A DNA stretch of 64,000 bases, taken from the NCBI GenBank assembly GCA_002269645.1, contig NIVC01000169.1, positions 62,001 to 126,000 on the forward strand, written 5' to 3'. A program made the translations under genes and the position numbers. Shown here one piece after another: positions 517 through 63,163 of this stretch (within the stretch, counting starts at the first letter, position 1; each line of letters opens with the position of its first letter). The notes below the pieces were generated by a model that worked only from the letters and a program-made list of their open reading frames with translations, made no database searches and was not told where the DNA came from. Source of the DNA: Macrostomum lignano. Taxonomy: Eukaryota.

Positions 517-18578
<18,062 letters not shown>

Positions 18579-23500: not shown

Positions 23501-26500
23501 TACTAGACTAGATTAGAACTAGACTAGAATAGACTATAGCTATACCTGTTTGCCTGTTTAACTGCTGTTTTTCTTGCTTGTCTATCTGTTTCTTGTTGTC
23601 TGGTTCTCATGACTCCTATGTCATATCTGGTCTGCCTGTTTCTGCCATTCCACCTGTCCCCATGTCCCTCACCTGGCAGAGTTCGAGCAGTCCATAGTCT
23701 ACTGGGCGCCAGACGTGGACGTGCCCCTGTGCCCGCATTGCGGCCTCCGGTTCCTGCCGCTGGCCCGTCGCCGACACCACTGCCGCCTGTGCGGCGCCGT
23801 CCTGTGCGCCGCCTGCAGCCTCTTCCTGCCCTACAAGCTGGCGCGAGTGCTCACTGCGCCACCCGCCGACGATGGCGACAGCGCTGATGCTGCCGCAGCC
23901 ACGGCTCCCGGGCTCGGCTTTATCCAACGATCTGGCTCCGAGTCGTCGCTTCACTCGCTGCTGACAGCGGCGGTTGTGAGCGGAGGCGGCGGCAGCGGCG
24001 GTAAGAAGCTGAGCTTCAGCAGAGCAACAGTTGGGTGTTTTCTTAATGTAAAAATGATGGTGTGGCTTCGGGAAGTAATAATCATAATTGCGGAAGGGCT
24101 GCGAGCACCTTGGCGCGCAATGATTTTGGCTATAACGCCTCATCTCGCTGAGTCCTGAGCACATGCACACGCTCACACGGGGTGTACATCGGCACTGACT
24201 TTCCAAACGTCAGTAATATCTAGACGGCACAAGATCTTATTAAGTCGCAGCAAAACAAAAGTGGATTAAGCCTCTCTGTGAATAATGATTCGCATTCCCA
24301 TGTCCAGTTTGAACCAATTAACTTGCACCATAGACTAACTGTACTGATCGACAGATGCTTCTTCAATAGCGATATAGCTGCATGGTTTGTATAGCCTGTT
24401 TTTTTTATCGTTATGGTTGTAGCTTAGCTAAAACAGTTAGTAACTCTTACTTATTTGCTGGCGAGGCAATTATTTTATTGAAGCAAGGTTAGGTTACTCC
24501 TGCCGTTTACCCTGCGATATAAAAATAATCAGGTTCGAATTCGTCTCGCGAAGCCCTTGTAATCCGCGTCTGTCCGGACTGTCGCGACTGTCTGGAGTTT
24601 CGCCGGCATCGGTCGGCAGCCAGGCAGCAATCAACTCTGATGCCGGCTTCTCCAATTAGCGAACTGTACAGACAGATGCGAGTTGCTTTGCTCAAGGCTG
24701 GCGATCTGTTGTCCGAGTACGAGCCAATGGCGGCTTCGCTTAGGCGAGGCGAAGATTCTTATAATTTGGCGCACGTGTCCGAGCTCAGGATGCAGATTAG
24801 GCAGCTGCTGGATCAGGTGAGCAGTCTGTAGCAGTAATGTAGATACTGTTCTGTAATCTAGATACTGTACTGTAATCTAGATACTGTACTGTAATCTAGA
24901 TACTGTACTGTAATCTAGACACTGTACTGTAATCTAGATACTGTACTGTAATGTAGATACTGTACTGTAATGTAGATACTGTACTGTAATATAGATACTG
25001 TACTGTAATATAGATACTGTACTGTAATTTAGATAGTGTACTGTAATGTAGAAACTGTACTGTAATCTAGATACTGTACTGTAATTTAGATAGTGTACTG
25101 TAATTTAGATACTGTACTGTAATGTAGATACTGTACTGTAATCTAGATACTGTACTGTAATGTAGAAACTGTACTGTAATTTAGATAGTGTACTGTAATG
25201 TAGAAACTGTACTGTAATGTAGATACTGTACTGTAATCTAGACACTGTACTGTAATGTAGATACTGTACTGTAATGTAGATACTGTACTGTAATCTAGAT
25301 ACTGTACTGTAATCTAGATACTGTACTCTAATTTAGATAGTGTACTGTAATTTAGATACTGTACTGTAATGTAGATACTGTACTGTAATCTAGACACTGT
25401 ACTGTAATGTAGATACTGTACTGTAATGTAGATACTGTACTGTAATCTAGATACTGTACTGTAATGTAGATACTGTACTGTAATCTAGACACTGTACTGT
25501 AATTTAGATACTGTACTGTAATGCAGATACTGAACTGTAATCTAGATACTGTACTGTAATGTAGATACTGTACTGTAATCTAGACACTGTACTGTAATTT
25601 AGATACTGTACTGTAATGTAGATACTGTACTGTAATCTAGATACTGTACTGTAATGTAGATACTGTACTGTAATGTAGATACTGTACTGTAATCTAGATA
25701 CTGTACTGTAATGTAGATACTGAACTGTAATCTAGATACTGTACTGTAATGTAGATACTGTACTTTAATGTAGATACTGAACTGTAATGTAATGTAGAGA
25801 CTAATGTAATGTAGATACTGTATTTTACATATAGATGCTCCTCTGTATATGTGGGCACAGCACTCTTCTCTATTATTCTCCGATACGGCATTTAACCTGG
25901 TGGTCCGTTCGAAACGCGCAAAATTTGTATGACTTGGTTCAAAAGTTGTTGCGTCATTCGTCAAAGTATAAATATATTCTTTCACCAAAGAAAATACGAA
26001 ACTCGCCTACTTTAAGTAGCATAGCTAGGATGCGTTAGCTAGCATTCTATCGTCTAAAATTGCTTTATTCCAAATTCGCACAGATCGACGCCGTCAGTCT
26101 GCGCATAGCCAGCCTGAGCGCCAGGGCGCAGACGCCGGACCCGGACGAGGCCTCGGACAACACGGCCGGCTTGCAAAAGCAGCTGCGCCAACAGCAATTG
26201 GCCAAGGAGGCTCGGGTTGAACGAGCAATCCGAGCCTATGCTGTTGCTTTTGTACGCGAAGGCCTCCTGATTGTCGCCTGCCTGCCGACCCCCGACCAGC
26301 TGCGGGAGCTGCGGGCTCAGCGGGCCGAGCAGCAGCGTCGGGAAGCCGAGGCCAGGCGCGCCGCCGCCGCCGCCAAGGAGCAGCAGCAGCGGTCACGTGC
26401 CGCTCCCCCGCCAGCGCCGCCTCCGCCACCGCCTCCGCAGGGCGCCTTCGTGGCGGCCACGGCGCGTCGCCGACCAGCAGCGGCCGTCGGGACCGGCGCG

Positions 26501-26824
26501 GACGAAGAAGCGGCGGACCCGCTGCTCGAGCAGATTGGCAACCTGCGCGACTTCATCGACCAGGCCAGGCAGGCCGGCCGCGCTGACGAGGTTCGCGCGC
26601 TGGAGGCCAACCTGGCTGAGCTGCTGGCCGAGCTGCACGCCAGGCAGGAGGCGGAGCGGCGACAGGCGAACGCCGCTGCCAACAAGCCGCCGGCCCCGCC
26701 GCCGCCGCCGCCGCCGAGGAATCCCTTCGAACCGGAAGTTCGCGTAGCCGCCAATCCCGGTTCAAACCCGTTCGAAACGGAAACAGACGAAGTTGAGTAC
26801 AGGGGCGTTAATCCATTCGATTAG
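20523..26824 (+). CDS. RBSN: Rabenosyn-5 (FYVE-domain Rab5/Rab4 effector), 5 coding exons, about 612 aa
   Basis: Exons 20523-20673, 22116-22457, 23680-24000, 24533-24816, 26084-26824, all GT-AG with matching phases. N-terminal C2H2 finger (EGFICPIC..LLEHFQAQH), TNKLLLRLDRL, FYVE (WAPD..CPHC..RRHHCRLCGAVLCAAC..RVCPDC), MAASLRRGEDSY, Rab-binding helix pair DPLLEQIGNLRDFIDQARQAGRADEVRALEANL, three C-terminal NPF motifs. Confidence 0.95.
21785..22030. mobile_element. Second (inverted, CpG-decayed) copy of the 15.6-kb dispersed repeat, in rabenosyn intron 1
   Basis: GGCACACAAAGTGTACATGCCTGACGATTAGAAAGTCAGGGCTGCTGTACACCCTGTGTGAGCG aligns to the reverse complement of about 15640-15715. Confidence 0.65.
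22713..23543. repeat. AT-rich degenerate pentamer satellite (ACTAG/AATAG/ATTAG with CTATAGCTATA palindromes)
   Basis: Direct reading; rabenosyn intron 2. Confidence 0.9.
24833..25822. repeat. Tandem minisatellite, 19-nt unit, about 51 copies
   Basis: Unit AGATACTGTACTGTAAT(C/G)T; starts about 17 nt after the donor at 24817. Confidence 0.97.
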
Positions 26825-28335: not shown

Positions 28336-31300
28336 ACAACTGGGTCATAGATAACTGATGCTTCAATGACCACAACTGGGTCATAGATACCGATGCTACC
28401 ATGACCACAACTGGGTCATAGATACCCGATGCTTCAATGACCACAACTGGGTCATAGATAACCGATGCTTCAATGACCACAACTGGGTCATAGATACCCG
28501 ATGCTTCAATGACCACAACTGGGTCATAGATACCCGATGCTTCAATGACCACAACTGGGTCATAGATAACCGATGCTTCAATGACCACAACTGGGTCATA
28601 GATACCGATGCTACCATGACCACAACTGGGTCATAGATAACGATGCTTCAATGACCACAACTGGGTCATAGATAACCGATGCTTCAATGACCACAACTGG
28701 GTCATAGATAACGATGCTTCAATGACCACAACTGGGTCATAGATAACCGATGCTTCAATGACCACAACTGGGTCATAGATAACCGATGCTTCAATGACCA
28801 CAACTGGGTCATAGATAACCGATGCTTCAATGACCACAACTGGGTCATAGATAACCGATGCTACCATGACCACAACTGGGTCATTTAATAACCGATGCTA
28901 CCATGACCACAACTGGGTCATAGATAACCGATGCTTCAATGACCACAACTGGGTCATAGATACCGATGCTTCAATGATCACAACTGGGTCATAGATAACC
29001 GATGCTACCATGACCACAACTGGGTCAAAGATAACCGATGCTACCATAACCACAACTGGGTCATAGATAACCGATGCTACCATGACCACAACTGGGTCAT
29101 AGATACCCGATGCTACCATGACCACAACTGGGTCATAGATAACCGATGCTACCATGACCACAACTGGGTCATAGATACCCGATGCTTCAATGACCACAAC
29201 TGGGTCATAGATACCCGATGCTTCAATGACCACAACTGGGTCATAGATACCCGATGCTACCATGACCACAACTGGGTCATAGATAACCGATGCTACCATG
29301 ACCACAACTGGGTCATAGATAACCGATGCTACCATGACCACAACTGGGTCATAGATAACCGATGCTACCATGACCACAACTGGGTCATAGATACCCGATG
29401 CTTCAATGACCACAACTGGGTCATAGATAACCGATGCTTCAATGATCACAACTGGGTCATAGATAACCGATGCTACCATGACCACAACTGGGTCATAGAT
29501 AACCGATGCTACCATGACCACAACTGGGTCATAGATAACCGATGCTTCAATGACCACAACTGGGTCATAGATAACCGATGCTTCAATGACCACAACTGGG
29601 TCATAGATAACCGATGCTTCAATGACCACAACTGGGTCATAGATAACCGATGCTACCATGACCACAACTGGGTCATTTAATAACCGATGCTACCATGACC
29701 ACAACTGGGTCATAGATAACCGATGCTTCAATGACCACAACTGGGTCATAGATACCGATGCTTCAATGATCACAACTGGGTCATAGATAACCGATGCTAC
29801 CATGACCACAACTGGGTCATAGATAACCGATGCTACCATGACCACAACTGGGTCATAGATAACCGATGCTACCATGACCACAACTGGGTCATAAATAACC
29901 GATGCTACCATGACCACAACTGGGTCATAAATAACCGATGCTACCATGACCACAACTGGGTCATAAATAACCGATGCTACCATGACCACAACTGGGTCAT
30001 AGATAACCGATGCTACCATGACCACAACTGGGTCATAAATAACCGATGCTACCATGACCACAACTGGGTCATAGATAACCGATGCTACCATGACCACAAC
30101 TGGGTCATAGATAACCGATGCTACCATGACCACAACTGGGTCATAGATAACCGATGCTACCATGACCACAACTGGGTCATAGATACCCGATGCTTCAATG
30201 ACCACAACTGGGTCATAGATAACCGATGCTTCAATGATCACAACTGGGTCATAGATAACCGATGCTACCATGACCACAACTGGGTCATAGATAACCGATG
30301 CTACCATGACCACAACTGGGTCATAGATAACCGATGCTTCAATGATCACAACTGGGTCATAGATAACCGATGCTACCATGACCACAACTGGGTCATAGAT
30401 AACCGATGCTTCAATGACCACAACTGGGTCATAGATACCCGATGCTACCATGACCACAACTGGGTCATAGATACCCGATGCTACCATGACCACAACTGGG
30501 TCATAGATAACCGATGCTACCATGACCACAACTGGGTCATAGATACCCGATGCTTCAATGACCACAACTGGGTCATAGATAACCGATGCTTCAATGATCA
30601 CAACTGGGTCATAGATAACCGATGCTACCATGACCACAACTGGGTCATAGATAACCGATGCTACCATGACCACAACTGGGTCATAGATAACCGATGCTTC
30701 AATGATCACAACTGGGTCATAGATAACCGATGCTACCATGACCACAACTGGGTCATAGATAACCGATGCTTCAATGACCACAACTGGGTCATAGATAACC
30801 GATGCTACCATGACCACAACTGGGTCATAGATACCGATGCTACCATGACCACAACTGGGTCATAGATAACCGATGCTACCATGACCACAACTGGGTCATA
30901 GATAACCGATGCTTCAATGACCACAACTGGGTCATAGATACCCGATGCTACCATGACCACAACTGGGTCATAGATAACCGATGCTACCATGACCACAACT
31001 GGGTCATAGATAACCGATGCTACCATGACCACAACTGGGTCATAGATAACCGATGCTACCATGACCACAACTGGGTCATTTAATAACCGATGCTACCATG
31101 ACCACAACTGGGTCATAGATAACCGATGCTTCAATGACCACAACTAGGTCATTTAATATCCGATGCTACCATGACCACATCTGGGTCATTTGATAACCGA
31201 TACTACCATGACCACAACTGGATAATTTATTAACCGATGCTACCATGACCACAACTGGGTCATAGATAACCGATGCTACCATGACCACAACTGGGTCATA

Positions 31301-32858
31301 GATAACCGATGCTTCAATGATCACAACTGGGTCATAGATAACCGATGCTTCAATGACCACAACTAGGTCATTTAATAACCGATGCTACCATGACCACATC
31401 TGGGTCATTTGATAACCGATACTACCATGACCACAACTGGATAATTTATTAACCGATGCTACCATGACCACAACTGGGTCATAGATAACCGATGCTACCA
31501 TGACCACAACTGGGTCATAAATAACCGATGCTACCATGACCACAACTGGGTCATAAATAACCGATGCTACCATGACCACAACTGGGTCATAAATAACCGA
31601 TGCTACCATGACCACAACTGGGTCATAGATAACCGATGCTACCATGACCACAACTGGGTCATAAATAACCGATGCTACCATGACCACAACTGGGTCATAA
31701 ATAACCGATGCTACCATGACCACAACTGGGTCATAGATAACAGATGCTACCATGACCACAACTGGGTCATAGATAACCGATGCTACCATGACCACAACTG
31801 GGTCATAGATAACCGATGCTACCATGACCACAACTGGGTCATTTAATAACCGATGCTACCATGACCACAACTGGGTCATAGATAACCGATGCTTCAATGA
31901 CCACAACTGGGTCATAGATACCGATGCTTCAATGATCACAACTGGGTCATAGATAACCGATGCTACCATGACCACAACTGGGTCATAGATAACCGATGCT
32001 ACCATGACCACAACTGGGTCATAGATAACCGATGCTACCATGACCACAACTGGGTCATAGATAACCGATGCTACCATGACCACAACTGGGTCATAGATAA
32101 CCGATGCTACCATGACCACAACTGGGTCATAGATAACCGATGCTACCATGACCACAACTGGGTCATAGATACCGATGCTTCAATGACCACAACTGGGTCA
32201 TAGATACCGATGCTACCATGACCACAACTGGGTCATAGATAACCGATGCTACCATGACCACAACTGGGTCATAGATAACCGATGCTACCATGACCACAAC
32301 TGGGTCATAGATAACCGATGCTACCATGACCACAACTGGGTCATAGATAACCGATGCTACCATGACCACAACTGGGTCATAGATAACCGATGCTACCATG
32401 ACCACAACTGGGTCATAGATACCCGATGCTTCAATGACCACAACTGGGTCATAGATAACCGATGCTTCAATGATCACAACTGGGTCATAGATAACCGATG
32501 CTACCATGACCACAACTGGGTCATAGATAACCGATGCTACCATGACCACAACTGGGTCATAGATAACCGATGCTTCAATGATCACAACTGGGTCATAGAT
32601 AACCGATGCTACCATGACCACAACTGGGTCATAGATAACCGATGCTTCAATGACCACAACTGGGTCATAGATAACCGATGCTTCAATGACCACAACTGGG
32701 TCATAGATACCCGATGCTACCATGACCACAACTGGGTCATAGATAACCGATGCTACCATGACCACAACTGGGTCATAGATAACCGATGCTACCATGACCA
32801 CAACTGGGTCATAGATACCCGATGCTTCAATGACCACAACTGGGTCATAGATAACCGA
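28336..32858. repeat. Satellite, 36-nt unit, about 125 copies (4.5 kb)
   Basis: Unit ACAACTGGGTCATAGATAACCGATGCT(ACC/TCA)ATGACC; source of the VVVMVASVIYDP pseudo-ORFs. Confidence 0.98.
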
Positions 32859-33352
32859 AGCTGATTTTAAAGGATTAATTTATCGAAGTTGCCTAGGAAG
32901 CCTACATTATAAGTTAATCTTGTAGCTCAAGTATTTATGTGTAGTACATTTTTTTCTATTGAGAATTTCTCTCATGTAAGATACTTGATGCTACGTACAA
33001 CAGGTGCTGAAACTGCATTAAAAGTGCATCAGTAATTTTGCTGTGTGGAATTCGTTTTAAATGGATTGATCGATAGGCAATAATTAATACCCAAAATGAG
33101 GCAATATTCCATTTGATTCTTCCACTAAATTGCAACCTTAATCGATGCTTATTAGAAATGTATGCGCCCGACTAATGCATCCCCATCGCGTTGCAACAAA
33201 CAGTAATCGATGTATAGCAGCAGCAGCAATATGGCTGAGCACGTTTTCTTTATTTCATCGGATTGCACGGATGTTACAATAGTTAATGTGGGAATATTGG
33301 TACATTAGTAGAATTGTCCCCATTTCTAGTTTGTTCTCGCTTGCTTATTAGC

Positions 33353-34325
33353 TTAAAACACTGAGTTGCAGCGCAGCTTGCAGTGCTGGAAGCTGATCTC
33401 CTTCCGTTTGTAGCAATCCAGCAGGCACTTGCCGAACGAGTCTCGCTTCTCTGTTGGCAGGCTCTCCTCCCACGGTAGCCTGTTGGCGCCTGTGATTTTG
33501 GCATGTCCAGAAAAATCATACATCGTACATTAGTGTGCTGACTTTCCTACCCTTCAATGTAACATATTTGTGCTGACTTTCCTAGCCTTCTATGTACATC
33601 TGCGTGTTGACTTTCCTACCCTTCAATGTACATATTTGTGCTGACTTTCCTACCCTTCAATGTACATATTTGTGCTGACTTTCCTACCCTTCAATGTACA
33701 TATTTGTGCTGACTTTCCTACCCTTCAATGTACATATTTGTGCTGACTTTCCCACCCTTCAATGTACATATTTGTGCTGACTTTCCCACCCTTCAATATA
33801 CATATTTGTGCTGACTTTCCTACCCTTCAATGTACATATTTGTGCTGACTTTCCTACCCTTCAATGTACATATTTGTGCTGACTTTCCTACCCTTCTATG
33901 TACATCTGTGTGCTGACTTCTCACCCTCCAATGTACAACTGCGTGTTTATTGATTTCCTACCCATCAATGAACATCGGAACTGTTTTTTCTATCCTTCAA
34001 TGTACATCTGAAGATCACCCACTACGCGCCTCAGTCGTTTCTGCCCTTAATTAGTATTTGCAATAAAACAAAATTAATTCGGCATTCTACCATTTTCGGA
34101 CTCGAAGTCAATCGACGGTGTCTGGAATGATTTTATTTGGAATTGTTTGAAAGTTTTGTTAGATAGGACTCTTGAAAATGCTCGGGGGAGTTGAAAAAAT
34201 TAATTATTAAATACCATAATTACCTCGCACTGGACCACAGGCTGCAGAGCGAGAGCGCAGACGGCTACCAGCAGCAGCAGGGACAGCGACAGAGGCGGGC
34301 GACGGCTTGAAATTTCGACTGACAT
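33353..34325 (-). CDS. Small secreted prepropeptide (89 aa) with C-terminal 4-Cys peptide; absent from ORF track
   Basis: Exons 34325-34224 (34 codons, phase 0, GAG|GTAATT), 34121-34091 (31 nt, cattccag|..G|GTAGAA, phase 0 to 1) and 33489-33353 (atcacag|, phase 1, TAA). Product MSVEISSRRPPLSLSLLLLVAVCALALQPVVQC-ETPSIDFESENGANRLPWEESLPTEKR-DSFGKCLLDCYKRKEISFQHCKLRCNSVF*. Start context tcaaaATG, two TATAAA at 34372-34367 and 34383-34378, AATAAA at 33254-33249. Confidence 0.8.
33534..34010. repeat. Tandem minisatellite, 34-nt unit, inside intron 2 of the peptide gene
   Basis: Unit TGCTGACTTTCCTACCCTTCAATGTACATATTTG. Confidence 0.93.
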
Positions 34326-41587: not shown

Positions 41588-55466
<13,879 letters not shown>

Positions 55467-57409: not shown

Positions 57410-60400
57410 ATGCACTGCAGGTACTCTGCAATGCTTAAACACTACAGGTACTCGGTGATTCTTAAACACTACAGGTACTCGGTGATGCTTAAACACTACA
57501 GGCACTCGGTGATTCTTAAACACTACAGGTACTCGGTGATGCTTAAACACTACAGGTACTCGGTGATTCTTAAACACTACAGGTACTCGGTGATGCTTAA
57601 ACTCTGTGATTCTTAAACACTACAGGTACACTGTGATTCTTAAACACTACAGGTACTCGGTGATGCTTAAACTCTGTGATTCTTAAACACTACAGGTACA
57701 CTGTGATTCTTAAACACTACAGGTACTCGGTGATGCTTAAACACTACAATTACTCGGTGATGCTTAAACACTACAATTACTCGGTGATGCTTAAACACTA
57801 CAATTACTCGGTGATTCTTAAACACTACAGGTACTCGGTGATGCTTAAACTCTGTGATTCTTAAACACTACAGGTACACTGTGATTCTTAAACACTACAG
57901 GTACTCGGTGATGCTTAAACTCTGTGATTCTTAAACACTACAGGTACACTGTGATTCTTAAACACTACAGGTACTCGGTGATGCTTAAACACTACAATTA
58001 CTCGGTGATGCTTAAACACTACAATTACTCGGTGATGCTTAAACACTACAATTACTCGGTGATTCTTAAACACTACAGGTACTCGGTGATGCTTAAACTC
58101 TGTGATTCTTAAACACTACAGGTACACTGTGATTCTTAAACACTACAGGTACTCGGTGATGCTTAAACTCTGTGATTCTTAAACACTACAGGTACACTGA
58201 GATTCTTAAACTCTACAGGTACTCGGTGATGCTTAAACACTACAATTACTCGGTGATGCTTAAACACTACAATTACTCGGTGATGCTTAAACACTACAAT
58301 TACTCGGTGATTCTTAAACACTACAGGTACTCGGTGATGCTTAAACTCTGTGATTCTTAAACACTACAGGTACACTGTGATTCTTAAACACTACAGGTAC
58401 TCGGTGATGCTTAAACTCTGTGATTCTTAAACACTACAGGTACACTGTGATTCTTAAACACTACAGGTACTCGGTGATGCTTAAACACTACAATTACTCG
58501 GTGATGCTTAAACACTACAATTACTCGGTGATGCTTAAACACTACAATTACTCGGTGATTCTTAAACACTACAGGTACTCGGTGATGCTTAAACTCTGTG
58601 ATTCTTAAACACTACAGGTACACTGTGATTCTTAAACACTACAGGTACTCGGTGATGCTTAAACTCTGTGATTCTTAAACACTACAGGTACACTGTGATT
58701 CTTAAACACTACAGGTACTCGGTGATGCTTAAACACTACAATTACTCGGTGATGCTTAAACACTACAATTACTCGGTGATGCTTAAACACTACAATTACT
58801 CGGTGATGCTTAAACACTACAATTACTCGGTGATGCTTAAACACTACAATTACTCGGTGATTCTTAAACACTACAGGTACTCGGTGATGCTTAAACTCTG
58901 TGATTCTTAAACACTACAGGTACACTGTGATTCTTAAACACTACAGGTACTCGGTGATGCTTAAACTCTGTGATTCTTAAACACTACAGGTACACTGTGA
59001 TTCTTAAACACTACAGGTACTCGGTGATGCTTAAACACTACAATTACTCGGTGATGCTTAAACACTACAATTACTCGGTGATTCTTAAACACTACAGGTA
59101 CTCGGTGATGCTTAAACTCTGTGATTCTTAAACACTACAGGTACACTGTGATTCTTAAACACTACAGGTACTCGGTGATGCTTAAACTCTGTGATTCTTA
59201 AACACTACAGGTACACTGTGATTCTTAAACACTACAGGTACTCGGTGATGCTTAAACACTACAATTACTCGGTGATGCTTAAACACTACAATTACTCGGT
59301 GATGCTTAAACACTACAATTACTCGGTGATGCTTAAACACTACAGGTACACTGTGATGCTTAAACTCTGTGATTCTTAAACACTACAGGTACACTGTGAT
59401 TCTTAAACACTACAGGTACACTGTGATTCTTAAACACTACAGGTACACTGTGATTCTTAAACACTACAGGTACTCGGTGATGCTTAAACTCTGTGATTCT
59501 TAAACACTACAGGTACACTGTGATTCTTAAACACTACAGGTACTCGGTGATGCTTAAACTCTGTGATTCTTAAACACTACAGGTACACTGTGATTCTTAA
59601 ACACTACAGGTACTCGGTGATGCTTAAACACTACAATTACTCGGTGATGCTTAAACACTACAATTACTCGGTGATGCTTAAACACTACAATTACTCGGTG
59701 ATTCTTAAACACTACAGGTACTCGGTGATGCTTAAACTCTGTGATTCTTAAACACTACAGGTACACTGTGATTCTTAAACACTACAGGTACTCGGTGATG
59801 CTTAAACTCTGTGATTCTTAAACACTACAGGTACACTGTGATTCTTAAACACTACAGGTACTCGGTGATGCTTAAACACTACAATTACTCGGTGATGCTT
59901 AAACACTACAGGTACACTGTGATTCTTAAACACTACAGGTACACTGTGATTCTTAAACACTACAGGTACTCGGTGATGCTTAAACACTACAATTACTCGG
60001 TGATGCTTAAACACTACAGGTACACTGTGATTCTTAAACACTACAGGTACTCAGTGATGCTTAAACACTACAATTACTCGGTGATGCTTAAACACTACAG
60101 GTACTCTGTGATTCTTAAACACTACAGGTACACTGTGATTCTTAAACACTACAGGTACTCGGTGATGCTTAAACACTATAATTACTCGGTGATGCTTAAA
60201 CACTACAGGTACTCGGTGATGCTTAAACACTACAGGTACACTGTGATTCTTAAACACTACAGGTACACTGTGATTCTTAAACACTACAGGTACTCAGTGA
60301 TGCTTAAACACTACAATTACTCGGTGATGCTTAAACACTACAGGTACTCGGTGATGCTTAAACACTACAGGTACACTGTGATTCTTAAACACTACAGGTT

Positions 60401-62728
60401 CACTGTGATTCTTAAACACTACAGGTACTCGGTGATGCTTAAACACTACAATTACTCGGTGATGCTTCAACACTACAGGTACTCGGTGATGCTTAAACTC
60501 TGTGATTCTTAAACACTACAGGTACTCGGTGATGCTTAAACACTACAGGTACACTGTGATTCTTAAACACTACAGGTACTCGGTGATGCTTAAACACTAC
60601 AATTACTCGGTGATGCTTAAACACTACAGGTACTCTGTGATTCTTAAACACTACAGGTACACTGTGATTCTTAAACACTACAGGTACTCGGTGATGCTTA
60701 AACACTATAATTACTCGGTGATGCTTAAACACTACAGGTACTCGGTGATGCTTAAACACTACAGGTACACTGTGATTCTTAAACACTACAGGTACACTGT
60801 GATTCTTAAACACTACAGGTACTCAGTGATGCTTAAACACTACAATTACTCGGTGATGCTTAAACACTACAGGTACTCGGTGATGCTTAAACACTACAGG
60901 TACACTGTGATTCTTAAACACTACAGGTACACTGTGATTCTTAAACACTACAGGTACTCGTGTGATGCTTAAACACTACAATTACTCGGTGATGCTTCAA
61001 CACTACAGGTACTCGGTGATGCTTAAACTCTGTGATTCTTAAACACTACAGGTACTCGGTGATGCTTAAACACTACAGGTACACTGTGATTCTTAAACAC
61101 TACAGGTACTCGGTGATGCTTAAACACTACAATTACTCGGTGATGCTTAAACACTACAGGTACACTGTGATTCTTAAACACTACAGGTACTCAGTGATGC
61201 TTAAACACTACAATTACTCGGTGATGCTTAAACACTACAGGTACTCGGTGATGCTTAAACACTACAATTACTCGGTGATGCTTAAACACTACAGGTACAC
61301 TGTGATTCTTAAACACTACAGGTACTCGGTGATGCTTAAACACTACAATTACTCGGTGATGCTTAAACACTACAGGTACACTGTGATTCTTAAACACTAC
61401 AGGTACTCAGTGATGCTTAAACACTACAATTACTCGGTGATGCTTAAACACTACAGGTACTCTGTGATTCTTAAAAACTACAGGTACTCAGTGATGCTTA
61501 AACACTACAACTACTCGGTGATTCTTAAACACTACAGGTACACTGTGATTCTTAAACACTACAGGTACACTGTGATTCTTAAACACTACAGGTACTCGGT
61601 GATGCTTAAACACTACAATTACTCGGTGATGCTTAAACACTACAGGTACTCGGTGATGCTTAAACACTACAGGTACACTGTGATTCTTAAACACTACAGG
61701 TACACTGTGATTCTTAAACACTACAGGTACTCAGTGATGCTTAAACACTACAATTACTCGGTGATGCTTAAACACTACAGGTACACTGTGATTCTTAAAC
61801 ACTACAGGTACTCGGTGATGCTTCAACACTACAGGTACTCGGTGATGCTTAAACTCTGTGATTCTTAAACACTACAGGTACTCGGTGATGCTTAAACTCT
61901 GTGATTCTTAAACACTACAGGTACTCTGCAATGCTTAAACACTACAAGTACTCGGTGATGCTTAAACACTACAGGTACTCGGTGATGCTTAAACTCTGTG
62001 ATTCTTAAACACTACAGGTACTCGGTGATGCTTAAACACTACAGGTACTCTGCAATGCTTAAACACTACAGGTACTCTGCAATGCTTAAACACTACAGGT
62101 ACTCTGCAATGCTTAAACACTACAGGTACTCTGCAATGCTTAAACACTACAGGTACTCTGCAATGCTTAAACACTACAGGTACTCTGCAATGCTTAAACA
62201 CTACAGGTACTCTGCAATGCTTAAACACTACAGGTACTCTGCAATGCTTAAACACTACAGGTACTCTGCAATGCTTAAACACTACAGGTACTCTGCGATG
62301 CTTGAACTCTGTGATTCTTTAACACTACAAGTACACTGTGATGCTTAAACACTACAGGTACTCTGCAATGCTTAAACACTACAGGTACTCGGTGATGCTC
62401 AAACACTACAGGTACTCTGCAATGCTTAAACACTACAGGTACTCTGCAATGCTTAAACACTACAGGTACTCGGTGATGCTTAAACACTACAGGTACTCTG
62501 CAATGCTTAAACACTACAGGTACTCGGTGATGCTTAAACACTACAGGTACTCTGCAATGCTTAAACACTACAGGTACTCTGCAATGCTTAAACACTACAG
62601 GTACTCTGCGATGCTTGAACTCTGTGATTCTTTAACACTACAAGTACACTGTGATGCTTAAACACTACAGGTACTCTGCAATGCTTAAACACTACGGGTA
62701 CTCTGCAATGCTTAAACACTACAGGTAC
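57410..62728. repeat. Satellite, 27-nt monomer plus 16-nt deletion monomer, with a 248-bp higher-order repeat in the left part (5.3 kb)
   Basis: Monomer CTTAAACACTACAGGTACTCGGTGAT(G/T), short form CTTAAACTCTGTGATT. Pseudo-ORF starts at 57676, 57924, 58172, 58420 and 58668 are spaced exactly 248 bp (8x27 + 2x16). Confidence 0.97.
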
Positions 62729-63163
62729 TGCTGTGGTGCTCTGCGAGCCAATCATTTCCCCAAGAAAAGTTTTGCCTCTCGGTCGCTAGGTGGTGTTGGT
62801 TACTTCAGAATTGGTTTGACCTTCAGCTGATCCTGGGAAGCTGCAGCCCGTCTGCGGAGCCTGAATTCGGTGCCTGCTTTGGGTCCGCATCTGTAAAGGT
62901 TGATTTGAATTTTACAAGTTAAATCAGAAATGAAACTGTTGACAGAATCACTATCCATGGTCATATTTGACCTATATTTATCTATGTACGAGTATCCCTG
63001 TACCATGTATAAATGTGCCATGTATTCCTGTCCCGTGTTTCCTTGTGCCATATATCCCTTCCCATGTATTCCGCTCCCATCCATCCCTGTCCCAACCATC
63101 CTTGTCCCATCCGGGTCTACGAAATTTGTCAGCGGGCAAACTTCGGCGGACAAACGTCGTGCT

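Follow-up and report, generated by a model that had tools for sequence, protein, structure and literature searches.

A three-exon gene of Macrostomum lignano, annotated in GenBank yet uncharacterised, for a candidate prepropeptide with a predicted helical-hairpin product

The gene described here is located on the minus strand, between positions 34325 and 33353, of a 64,000-nucleotide stretch of the genome of the free-living flatworm Macrostomum lignano (contig NIVC01000169.1, positions 62,001 to 126,000; hereafter the window, to which all positions refer). With a confidence a little above even, we take it to be a genuine, transcribed, annotated but uncharacterised three-exon gene encoding an 89-amino-acid prepropeptide. 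The product consists of a predicted signal peptide, an acidic pro-region, a dibasic Lys-Arg (KR) and a C-terminal peptide with four regularly spaced cysteines, for which a helix-loop-helix fold is predicted.

Coding exon 1 (34325–34224, minus strand, 102 nt, residues 1–34) runs from the ATG to the donor GAG/GTAATT (the slash marks the junction) and contains the start codon, an n-region carrying the arginines R8 and R9, and the hydrophobic core L12–L27. Intron 1 (34223–34122, minus strand, 102 nt, GT..AG, phase 0) separates it from coding micro-exon 2 (34121–34091, minus strand), which is 31 nt long, is bounded by the acceptor TTCCAG/ACACC and the donor AAAATG/GTAGAA, and encodes residues 35–44 and the first base of codon 45, within the acidic pro-region. 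Intron 2 (34090–33490, minus strand, 601 nt, GT..AG, phase 1) is followed by coding exon 3 (33489–33353, minus strand, 137 nt including the TAA stop; acceptor ATCACAG/GCGCC), which encodes the remaining pro-region, K59–R60 (33448–33443) and the 29-residue cysteine-rich peptide. Joined together, the three exons form a 270-nt coding sequence for the 89-residue protein MSVEISSRRPPLSLSLLLLVAVCALALQPVVQCETPSIDFESENGANRLPWEESLPTEKRDSFGKCLLDCYKRKEISFQHCKLRCNSVF. The start codon is the first in-frame ATG downstream of an upstream stop; a longer open reading frame (ORF) from an upstream ATG is ruled out by an in-frame stop 16 codons upstream. Retention of either intron leads to an early stop. An earlier reading of the window, made from its letters without database searches (the sequence-only reading), had proposed three exons joined through GT–AG introns of phases 0 and 1. 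All of its coordinates agree with the model given here and with the annotated gene described below, the spliced ORF yields exactly the protein that it had spelled out, and the alternative last-exon frame that it had named, APTGYRGRR, is the one that arises when the 31-nt exon is skipped.

The 89-residue product is identical over its full length (100%) to the GenBank protein PAA67969.1 (BOX15_Mlig008733g1, M. lignano), micro-exon 2 included. PAA67969.1 is encoded by gene Mlig008733.g1 on contig NIVC01001435.1 of the same assembly (GCA_002269645.1) and has been part of the Mlig_3_7 GenBank annotation since 2017, labelled "hypothetical protein"; the gene had been called hidden in the sequence-only reading, and that description does not hold, although the protein is uncharacterised. 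Because the window and NIVC01001435.1 are syntenic, with about 94–99% identity, we regard the window as another copy, allele or assembly of the PAA67969.1 locus in this hidden-polyploid flatworm. The assembly annotation was built solely from a genome-guided RNA sequencing (RNA-seq) transcriptome, using STAR, StringTie and TACO, with TBONE for boundaries and TransDecoder for ORFs (PMC5730564). Since the GenBank annotation came only from RNA-seq-derived transcripts, the exon structure rests on transcripts. An older, independent UniRef model, A0A1I8I5I3 (856 residues), ends in the same 89 residues, encoded by the same three exons. It is a chimera that maps to 42874–43919 and 34325–33353 of the window, both on the minus strand, and its upstream part is a misprediction, the minus-strand translation of a 14-bp minisatellite array; its name, "Translation initiation factor IF-2", misleads. 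Neither the gene identifier nor substrings of the peptide gave a match in the searchable full-text literature.

Comparison of the window with the NIVC01001435.1 copy points to constraint on the mature transcript: the exons, core promoter and 3′ untranslated region (UTR) are invariant, whereas introns and flanks have diverged. No difference is found in the 270 coding bases (exon 3 is identical at 137 of 137 positions), as against 41 differences at 1689 aligned sites (2.4%) in flanks and introns, and the probability of observing zero differences in 270 bases at the latter rate is 0.0013. Between their identical neighbouring exons, intron 1 shows two mismatches and four gap columns, and intron 2 shows 135 gap columns in its 34-bp repeat region, the intron of the NIVC01001435.1 copy being longer by 135 bases, or about four 34-bp units. 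The 125 nt preceding the ATG and the 3′ UTR through the AATAAA signal are identical in the two copies.

The 125-nt segment contains two TATAAA motifs, candidate TATA boxes on the minus strand (34383–34378 and 34372–34367; 58 and 47 nt before the ATG), both 100% kept in the second copy, and we infer that the pair acts as promoter. The AATAAA polyadenylation signal (33254–33249, minus strand) lies 98 nt beyond the stop codon. The earlier reading had reported an upstream TATAAA and an AATAAA about 100 nt past the stop; both are there, the former twice. Two AG acceptors, TTCCAG (34341–34336, minus strand) and TTCAG (34335–34331, minus strand), are located 10 and 5 nt before the start codon. TTCCAG matches [T/C]TNCAG, the acceptor motif for trans-splicing in M. 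lignano (PMC8629364), and the chimeric model A0A1I8I5I3 attaches its upstream exons at the second AG. This pair may serve either for trans-splicing of the spliced leader or as a cis-acceptor in the 5′ UTR. The 5′ end would be either that of a TATAAA-driven capped mRNA with a leader of 10–20 nt, or a spliced leader added at TTCCAG. The M. lignano spliced leader ends in ATG; at both AG sites, this ATG would not be in frame with the precursor ORF.

Signal and processing features of the precursor were judged by sequence heuristics (hydropathy, the (−3,−1) rule and charge). Residues 1–11 form the n-region, followed by the 16-residue hydrophobic core L12–L27, with a maximal Kyte–Doolittle hydropathy of 3.21 for the 11-mer at residues 16–26; a membrane anchor would typically be longer than this core. 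Two sites are candidates for signal peptidase under the (−3,−1) rule, ALA/LQ after A26 and VQC/E after C33. The sequence-only reading had proposed a signal peptide ending VVQC/E: the signal-like N-terminus and the fit of that site stand, but it is only one of two candidates, because ALA/LQ fits the rule as well. The pro-region up to E58 has a net charge of −6 and an isoelectric point (pI) of 4.05. Directly after K59–R60 comes the predicted mature peptide DSFGKCLLDCYKRKEISFQHCKLRCNSVF (33442–33356, minus strand), 29 residues with a net charge of +3, a pI of 8.9 and a monoisotopic mass of 3462.65 Da with two disulfides. Its cysteine motif is C66-LLD-C70-x10-C81-KLR-C85, that is, C-x3-C-x10-C-x3-C. 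All parts of the layout proposed earlier (signal, acidic pro-region, KR and four-cysteine C-terminal peptide) are therefore found in the sequence.

K59–R60 is a standard dibasic site of the type cut by the proprotein convertases PC1 and PC2. A PC2 homologue of M. lignano is expressed in the nervous system and needed for development, its knock-down being lethal in juveniles (PMC4490696). Both features expected of a prohormone, a signal-like segment and a dibasic site before the peptide, were found by the heuristics above, as were both features of a cationic antimicrobial peptide (AMP) precursor, a cationic, amphipathic mature peptide of +3 and an anionic pro-piece of −6. The cysteine motif is not in itself rare: scanning the window in six frames turned up one further C-x3-C...C-x3-C match outside repeats (46748–46801, plus strand). 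That match, 18 residues long, has no signal or processing context and is taken as chance.

AlphaFold2, given the single sequence as input, predicts helices at residues 14–26, 60–72 and 78–88 of the full protein, with a mean predicted local distance difference test (pLDDT) score of 65.6. For the 30-mer R60–F89, it predicts a helix at positions 2–13, a five-residue loop and a helix at positions 19–29, with a mean pLDDT of 86.3 and one CxxxC on each predicted helix, in agreement with the two-helix hairpin anticipated by the sequence-only reading. The cysteine-stabilised alpha-alpha (CS-alpha-alpha) or alpha-hairpinin class is defined by XnC1X3C2XnC3X3C4Xn, two antiparallel helices and C1–C4 and C2–C3 bonds, and the cysteine pattern by itself is insufficient for classification or activity prediction (PMC7191063). 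Here the cysteine motif is present in the sequence, and the antiparallel helix-loop-helix with one CxxxC on each helix is present in the prediction only; on that model, the peptide would agree with the CS-alpha-alpha class, an assignment that is hypothetical. Foldseek searches of the Protein Data Bank (PDB) with the 30-mer model returned the conotoxin Mu8.1 (7PX2) as the top match, with a template modelling (TM) score of 0.71, a root mean square deviation of 1.2 Å and 37% identity over 27 columns. None of the matches was significant, which is to be expected of a model with only 30 residues. The full-length model, with its lower pLDDT, returned only noise.

The sequence-only reading had likened the cysteine spacing to that of kappa-hefutoxin 1. 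The spacing of this scorpion toxin (PDB 1HP9; GHACYRNCWREGNDEETCKERC) is C-x3-C-x9-C-x3-C, so that the claimed identity is off by one residue. Local alignment scores were compared with those of 2000 shuffles of the peptide with its cysteines fixed, for four comparators. The score against kappa-hefutoxin 1 was reached by 242 of the 2000 shuffles, that against vil14a (GGLGRCIYNCMNSGGGLSFIQCKTMCY; PMC9897318) by 15, that against VilXIVB by 1071 and that against Vil14.9 by 867. Because four comparators were used and the relatives of vil14a give no signal, we ascribe the similarity to vil14a to chance or convergence. Homology to kappa-hefutoxin is rejected on its shuffle result, its x9 spacing and the lack of a match in the PDB sequence searches. 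Membership in the Conus R-superfamily framework XIV is likewise rejected: the loop is x10 here versus x11 in C-x3-C-x11-C-x3-C, and only vil14a beats the shuffles. An aromatic residue after Cys2 and a lysine after Cys3 had also been put forward as hefutoxin-like. Y71 and K82 are indeed at these positions, but the functional dyad of hefutoxin consists of Tyr5, which follows Cys1, and Lys19, which follows Cys3; in the flatworm peptide Cys1 is followed by Leu.

Several groups of hairpin peptides can be set beside the flatworm product, which, as far as sequence can tell, appears to resemble them in scaffold and to be a member of none by descent. With the kappa-KTx toxins (kappa-hefutoxin 1 and OmTx1–3) and the Conus peptides vil14a and flf14a–c, it shares C-x3-C-xn-C-x3-C within 22–29 residues and two antiparallel helices (predicted here) with one CxxxC each; with hefutoxin and vil14a, a lysine right after Cys3; and with vil14a, the short local matches G-basic-C and SF..CK. 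It differs from this group in lacking significant sequence similarity and in its source, a non-venomous flatworm, and its loop (x10) differs in length from those of hefutoxin (x9) and the vil14a family (x11). The position of the aromatic residue, after Cys2 rather than Cys1, is a further difference from kappa-hefutoxin. The plant alpha-hairpinins (EcAMP1, MBP-1, Tk-AMP-X2, Luffin P1, VhTI and BWI-2c) have the same cysteine signature, helix-loop-helix and cationic character, and VhTI and BWI-2c have, as their P1 Arg, a basic residue four positions past Cys2, as here; they are of plant rather than animal origin, have a longer loop and show no sequence homology with the flatworm peptide. Their precursors are vicilin-derived or multi-unit, in contrast to the single-copy precursor with an acidic pro-piece described here.

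Among PDB structures, the first helical domain of conotoxin Mu8.1 comes closest to the predicted hairpin. It is a hairpin stapled by C18–C34 and C22–C30 (PMC10478764), that is, with C1–C4 and C2–C3 pairing of a C-x3-C-x7-C-x3-C motif. Mu8.1 as a whole, however, is a saposin-like macro-conotoxin of 89 residues and ten cysteines that forms a four-helix dimer, as opposed to the single hairpin here. Precursors of amphibian skin AMPs and of many invertebrate toxins and neuropeptides have the same order of signal, acidic spacer, KR and basic C-terminal peptide, but only the layout is shared; it is convergent among unrelated families and defines no family. The twin C-x3-C motif on two helices is also found in the mitochondrial small Tim proteins. 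In small Tims, however, the motifs lie further apart than in this peptide and a signal peptide is absent. Membership in this family is rejected on the N-terminal signal-like segment and the absence of a match to zf-Tim10_DDP or any other Pfam family at E values up to 10.

The lineage restriction suggested by the sequence-only reading is borne out: an exhaustive phmmer search of 1.84 × 10^9 representative proteins returned only the protein itself. A word-indexed search of 5.8 × 10^9 proteins gave three candidates, with only the protein itself significant. Pfam gave no match at E values up to 10, and PDB sequence searches with a 55-mer and the 30-mer gave nothing meaningful. No paralogue was detected by tblastn and a cysteine-pattern scan in the 64-kb window or the 21-kb GenBank locus; a weak tblastn match at 11146–10988 was judged to be chance because it has no cysteines. 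As the gene is an orphan, it is probably fast-evolving.

We propose the following route from precursor to peptide. The N-terminal hydrophobic signal would direct the precursor to the endoplasmic reticulum and be removed after A26 or C33. The acidic pro-region would mask or chaperone the basic C-terminal part until a subtilisin-like proprotein convertase cleaves after K59–R60. The freed 29-residue cationic peptide would then fold into two antiparallel helices stapled by C66–C85 and C70–C81, be secreted and act outside the cell. What is shown is the gene model, its annotation from transcripts and the purifying constraint that its exons display; the signal peptide, the fold and the pairing of the cysteines are predicted, and both the processing at KR and a physiological role for the 29-mer are inferred only. 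The predicted loop between the helices contains the internal KRK, and one may speculate that, if cut, it would give a two-chain, disulfide-linked peptide.

What the peptide does can be ranked on the basis of its anionic pro-piece and cationic peptide, its orphan status and its TATA-type promoter. The single most likely role, to which we lean tentatively and with less than even confidence, is that of a fast-evolving host-defence or effector peptide: a cationic amphipathic peptide behind an anionic pro-piece recalls the amphibian AMP precursors and the plant alpha-hairpinins. A possible but doubtful alternative is a peptide hormone or neuropeptide precursor, made in neuronal or neuroendocrine cells and cut at KR by PC2 in dense-core vesicles, with the stapled 29-mer acting on a receptor or channel. 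The order of signal, acidic spacer, dibasic KR and C-terminal peptide is the classic one for prohormones, and PC2 of M. lignano is restricted to the nervous system (PMC4490696). However, there is no amidation glycine and only a single copy of the peptide, and the protein database searches revealed no homologue in other flatworms or animals. Many flatworm neuropeptides are lineage-specific. Rather unlikely, in our judgement, is a reproductive or gland secretion (from seminal-fluid or prostate, shell or cement, pharyngeal or rhabdite glands) evolving fast under sexual or ecological selection. It would suit a short orphan product predicted to be secreted and a TATA-type promoter, a kind that secretory genes with tissue-specific, high expression typically have, and reproduction-related genes of Macrostomum have been described as evolving fast (PMC7336406). 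Against it, the identifier of the gene did not turn up in the searchable supplements on positional and reproductive genes, whose tables may be incomplete or differently labelled.

The predicted scaffold suggests two further activities, both of which we consider very improbable. An alpha-hairpinin-type inhibitor of trypsin-like proteases would use the inter-helix loop K72-R73-K74 as its reactive loop. In VhTI (Arg15 after Cys11) and BWI-2c (Arg19 after Cys15), the P1 residue lies four positions past Cys2 (PMC7191063), as K74 does relative to C70, but their loops are x13 and x12, respectively, versus x10 here, and with no sequence similarity to either inhibitor the likeness is confined to one position. 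A toxin-like blocker of voltage-gated potassium (Kv) channels, a functional counterpart either of kappa-hefutoxin and the kappa-KTx toxins or of vil14a, would have the same type of cysteine framework, the same predicted fold, K82 after Cys3 (compare K19 in hefutoxin) and a vil14a similarity above that of most cysteine-preserving shuffles. Yet the hefutoxin similarity is at chance level with a different spacing, and the vil14a score is probably the best of four chance scores, members of its own family showing no similarity. M. lignano grazes on diatoms and is not known to have a venom apparatus, which also counts against a Kv blocker. Moreover, activity cannot be predicted from the cysteine pattern by itself (PMC7191063).

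It is similarly improbable that the ORF is spurious and belongs to a transcript that is non-coding or expressed at a low level, its protein features being coincidental. The ORF is short, orphan and without homologues, it lies among minisatellites, and the same cysteine motif recurs once by chance in the window. Nevertheless, the frame stays open across two introns, a 31-nt exon included; a signal peptide, KR, four regular cysteines and a confident prediction of a helix hairpin come together in it; and the exons are invariant where the introns differ between copies. A more far-reaching proposal, which we consider unlikely, is that this is the first flatworm CS-alpha-alpha hairpin, arisen independently (possibly de novo) in Macrostomum and serving as a neuroactive modulator of ion channels or, once cut a second time at the internal KRK, as a two-chain, disulfide-linked, insulin-like peptide. 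If true, it would be the fourth independent origin of the scaffold, after scorpions, cone snails and plants.

Several points weigh against the view of the gene as the source of a processed, hairpin-forming secreted peptide. The support from transcripts depends on the way in which the published annotation was built, and Mlig008733 was not found in the searchable supplementary tables of M. lignano papers. The constraint test is weak, the two copies being near-identical duplicates or alleles, and the protein and window searches provided no orthologue or paralogue that could show conserved cysteines or a conserved KR. Cleavage of the signal is ambiguous, and a cut at A26 would leave a fifth cysteine, C33, in the pro-region. 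With Thr at P4 and Asp after it, the KR is not a furin site. The AlphaFold2 models were computed from the single sequence, without an alignment or a shuffled control; the Foldseek match to Mu8.1 is not significant (E = 3.8); and the disulfides C66–C85 and C70–C81 are assumed from the fold class. Finally, of the two predicted helices, with hydrophobic moments of 0.54 and 0.18, the second is only weakly amphipathic, less than ideal for a peptide that acts on membranes.

The surroundings of the gene are rich in repeats. More than 20 distinct minisatellite arrays, their units 10–89 bp long, take up about 27.8 of the 64 kb (43%) of the window, examples being 1261–2774, 13656–15454, 16055–17602, 53549–55080 and 57413–62729; Pfam matches to GLTT (53450–54748) and HC2 (50295–51353) are translations of repeats and not genes. 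A 36-bp-unit minisatellite (28336–32862; 4.5 kb, 125.8 copies, 94% matches) begins 491 bp past the stop codon of the peptide gene. Several of the ORFs listed for the window (for example 29690–30817) are translations of this array, which has a different register or length in the NIVC01001435.1 copy. Within the gene, a 34-bp minisatellite of 11.9 copies (33534–33937) makes up most of intron 2.

Two protein-coding segments can be recognised near the gene. A plus-strand ORF of 450 residues (42593–43945) matches the N-terminus of Bestrophin in its first 90 codons (Pfam E = 2.1 × 10^−21). Because the remainder of this ORF is a 14-bp repeat (42874–43919; 74.7 copies, 99% matches), it is probably a first coding exon joined to an intronic array. 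A second plus-strand ORF (26060–26821) matches the Rab-binding domain of Rabenosyn (PF11464, E = 6.9 × 10^−13) and probably belongs, as an exon, to a Rabenosyn-5-like gene. The recorded gene calls for NIVC01001435.1 have none at this position. Because the nearest recognisable genes are the bestrophin first exon, which is divergent and about 8 kb off, and the Rabenosyn-like ORF, the peptide gene looks isolated rather than part of an operon.

In sum, this is an ordinary gene for a lineage-restricted peptide, predicted to be secreted and to have a known type of fold. Animal genomes commonly encode orphan secreted peptides of similar size, and the gene touches no long-standing open question. It illustrates that "hypothetical proteins" in transcript-based annotations can conceal recognisable peptide precursors. 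Should the peptide be produced in the predicted form, it would extend the CS-alpha-alpha (alpha-hairpinin-like) scaffold, already in use for designer Kv-channel blockers, to the Platyhelminthes. As M. lignano is amenable to transgenesis and RNA interference, the gene would offer a tractable example of a secreted peptide confined to one lineage.

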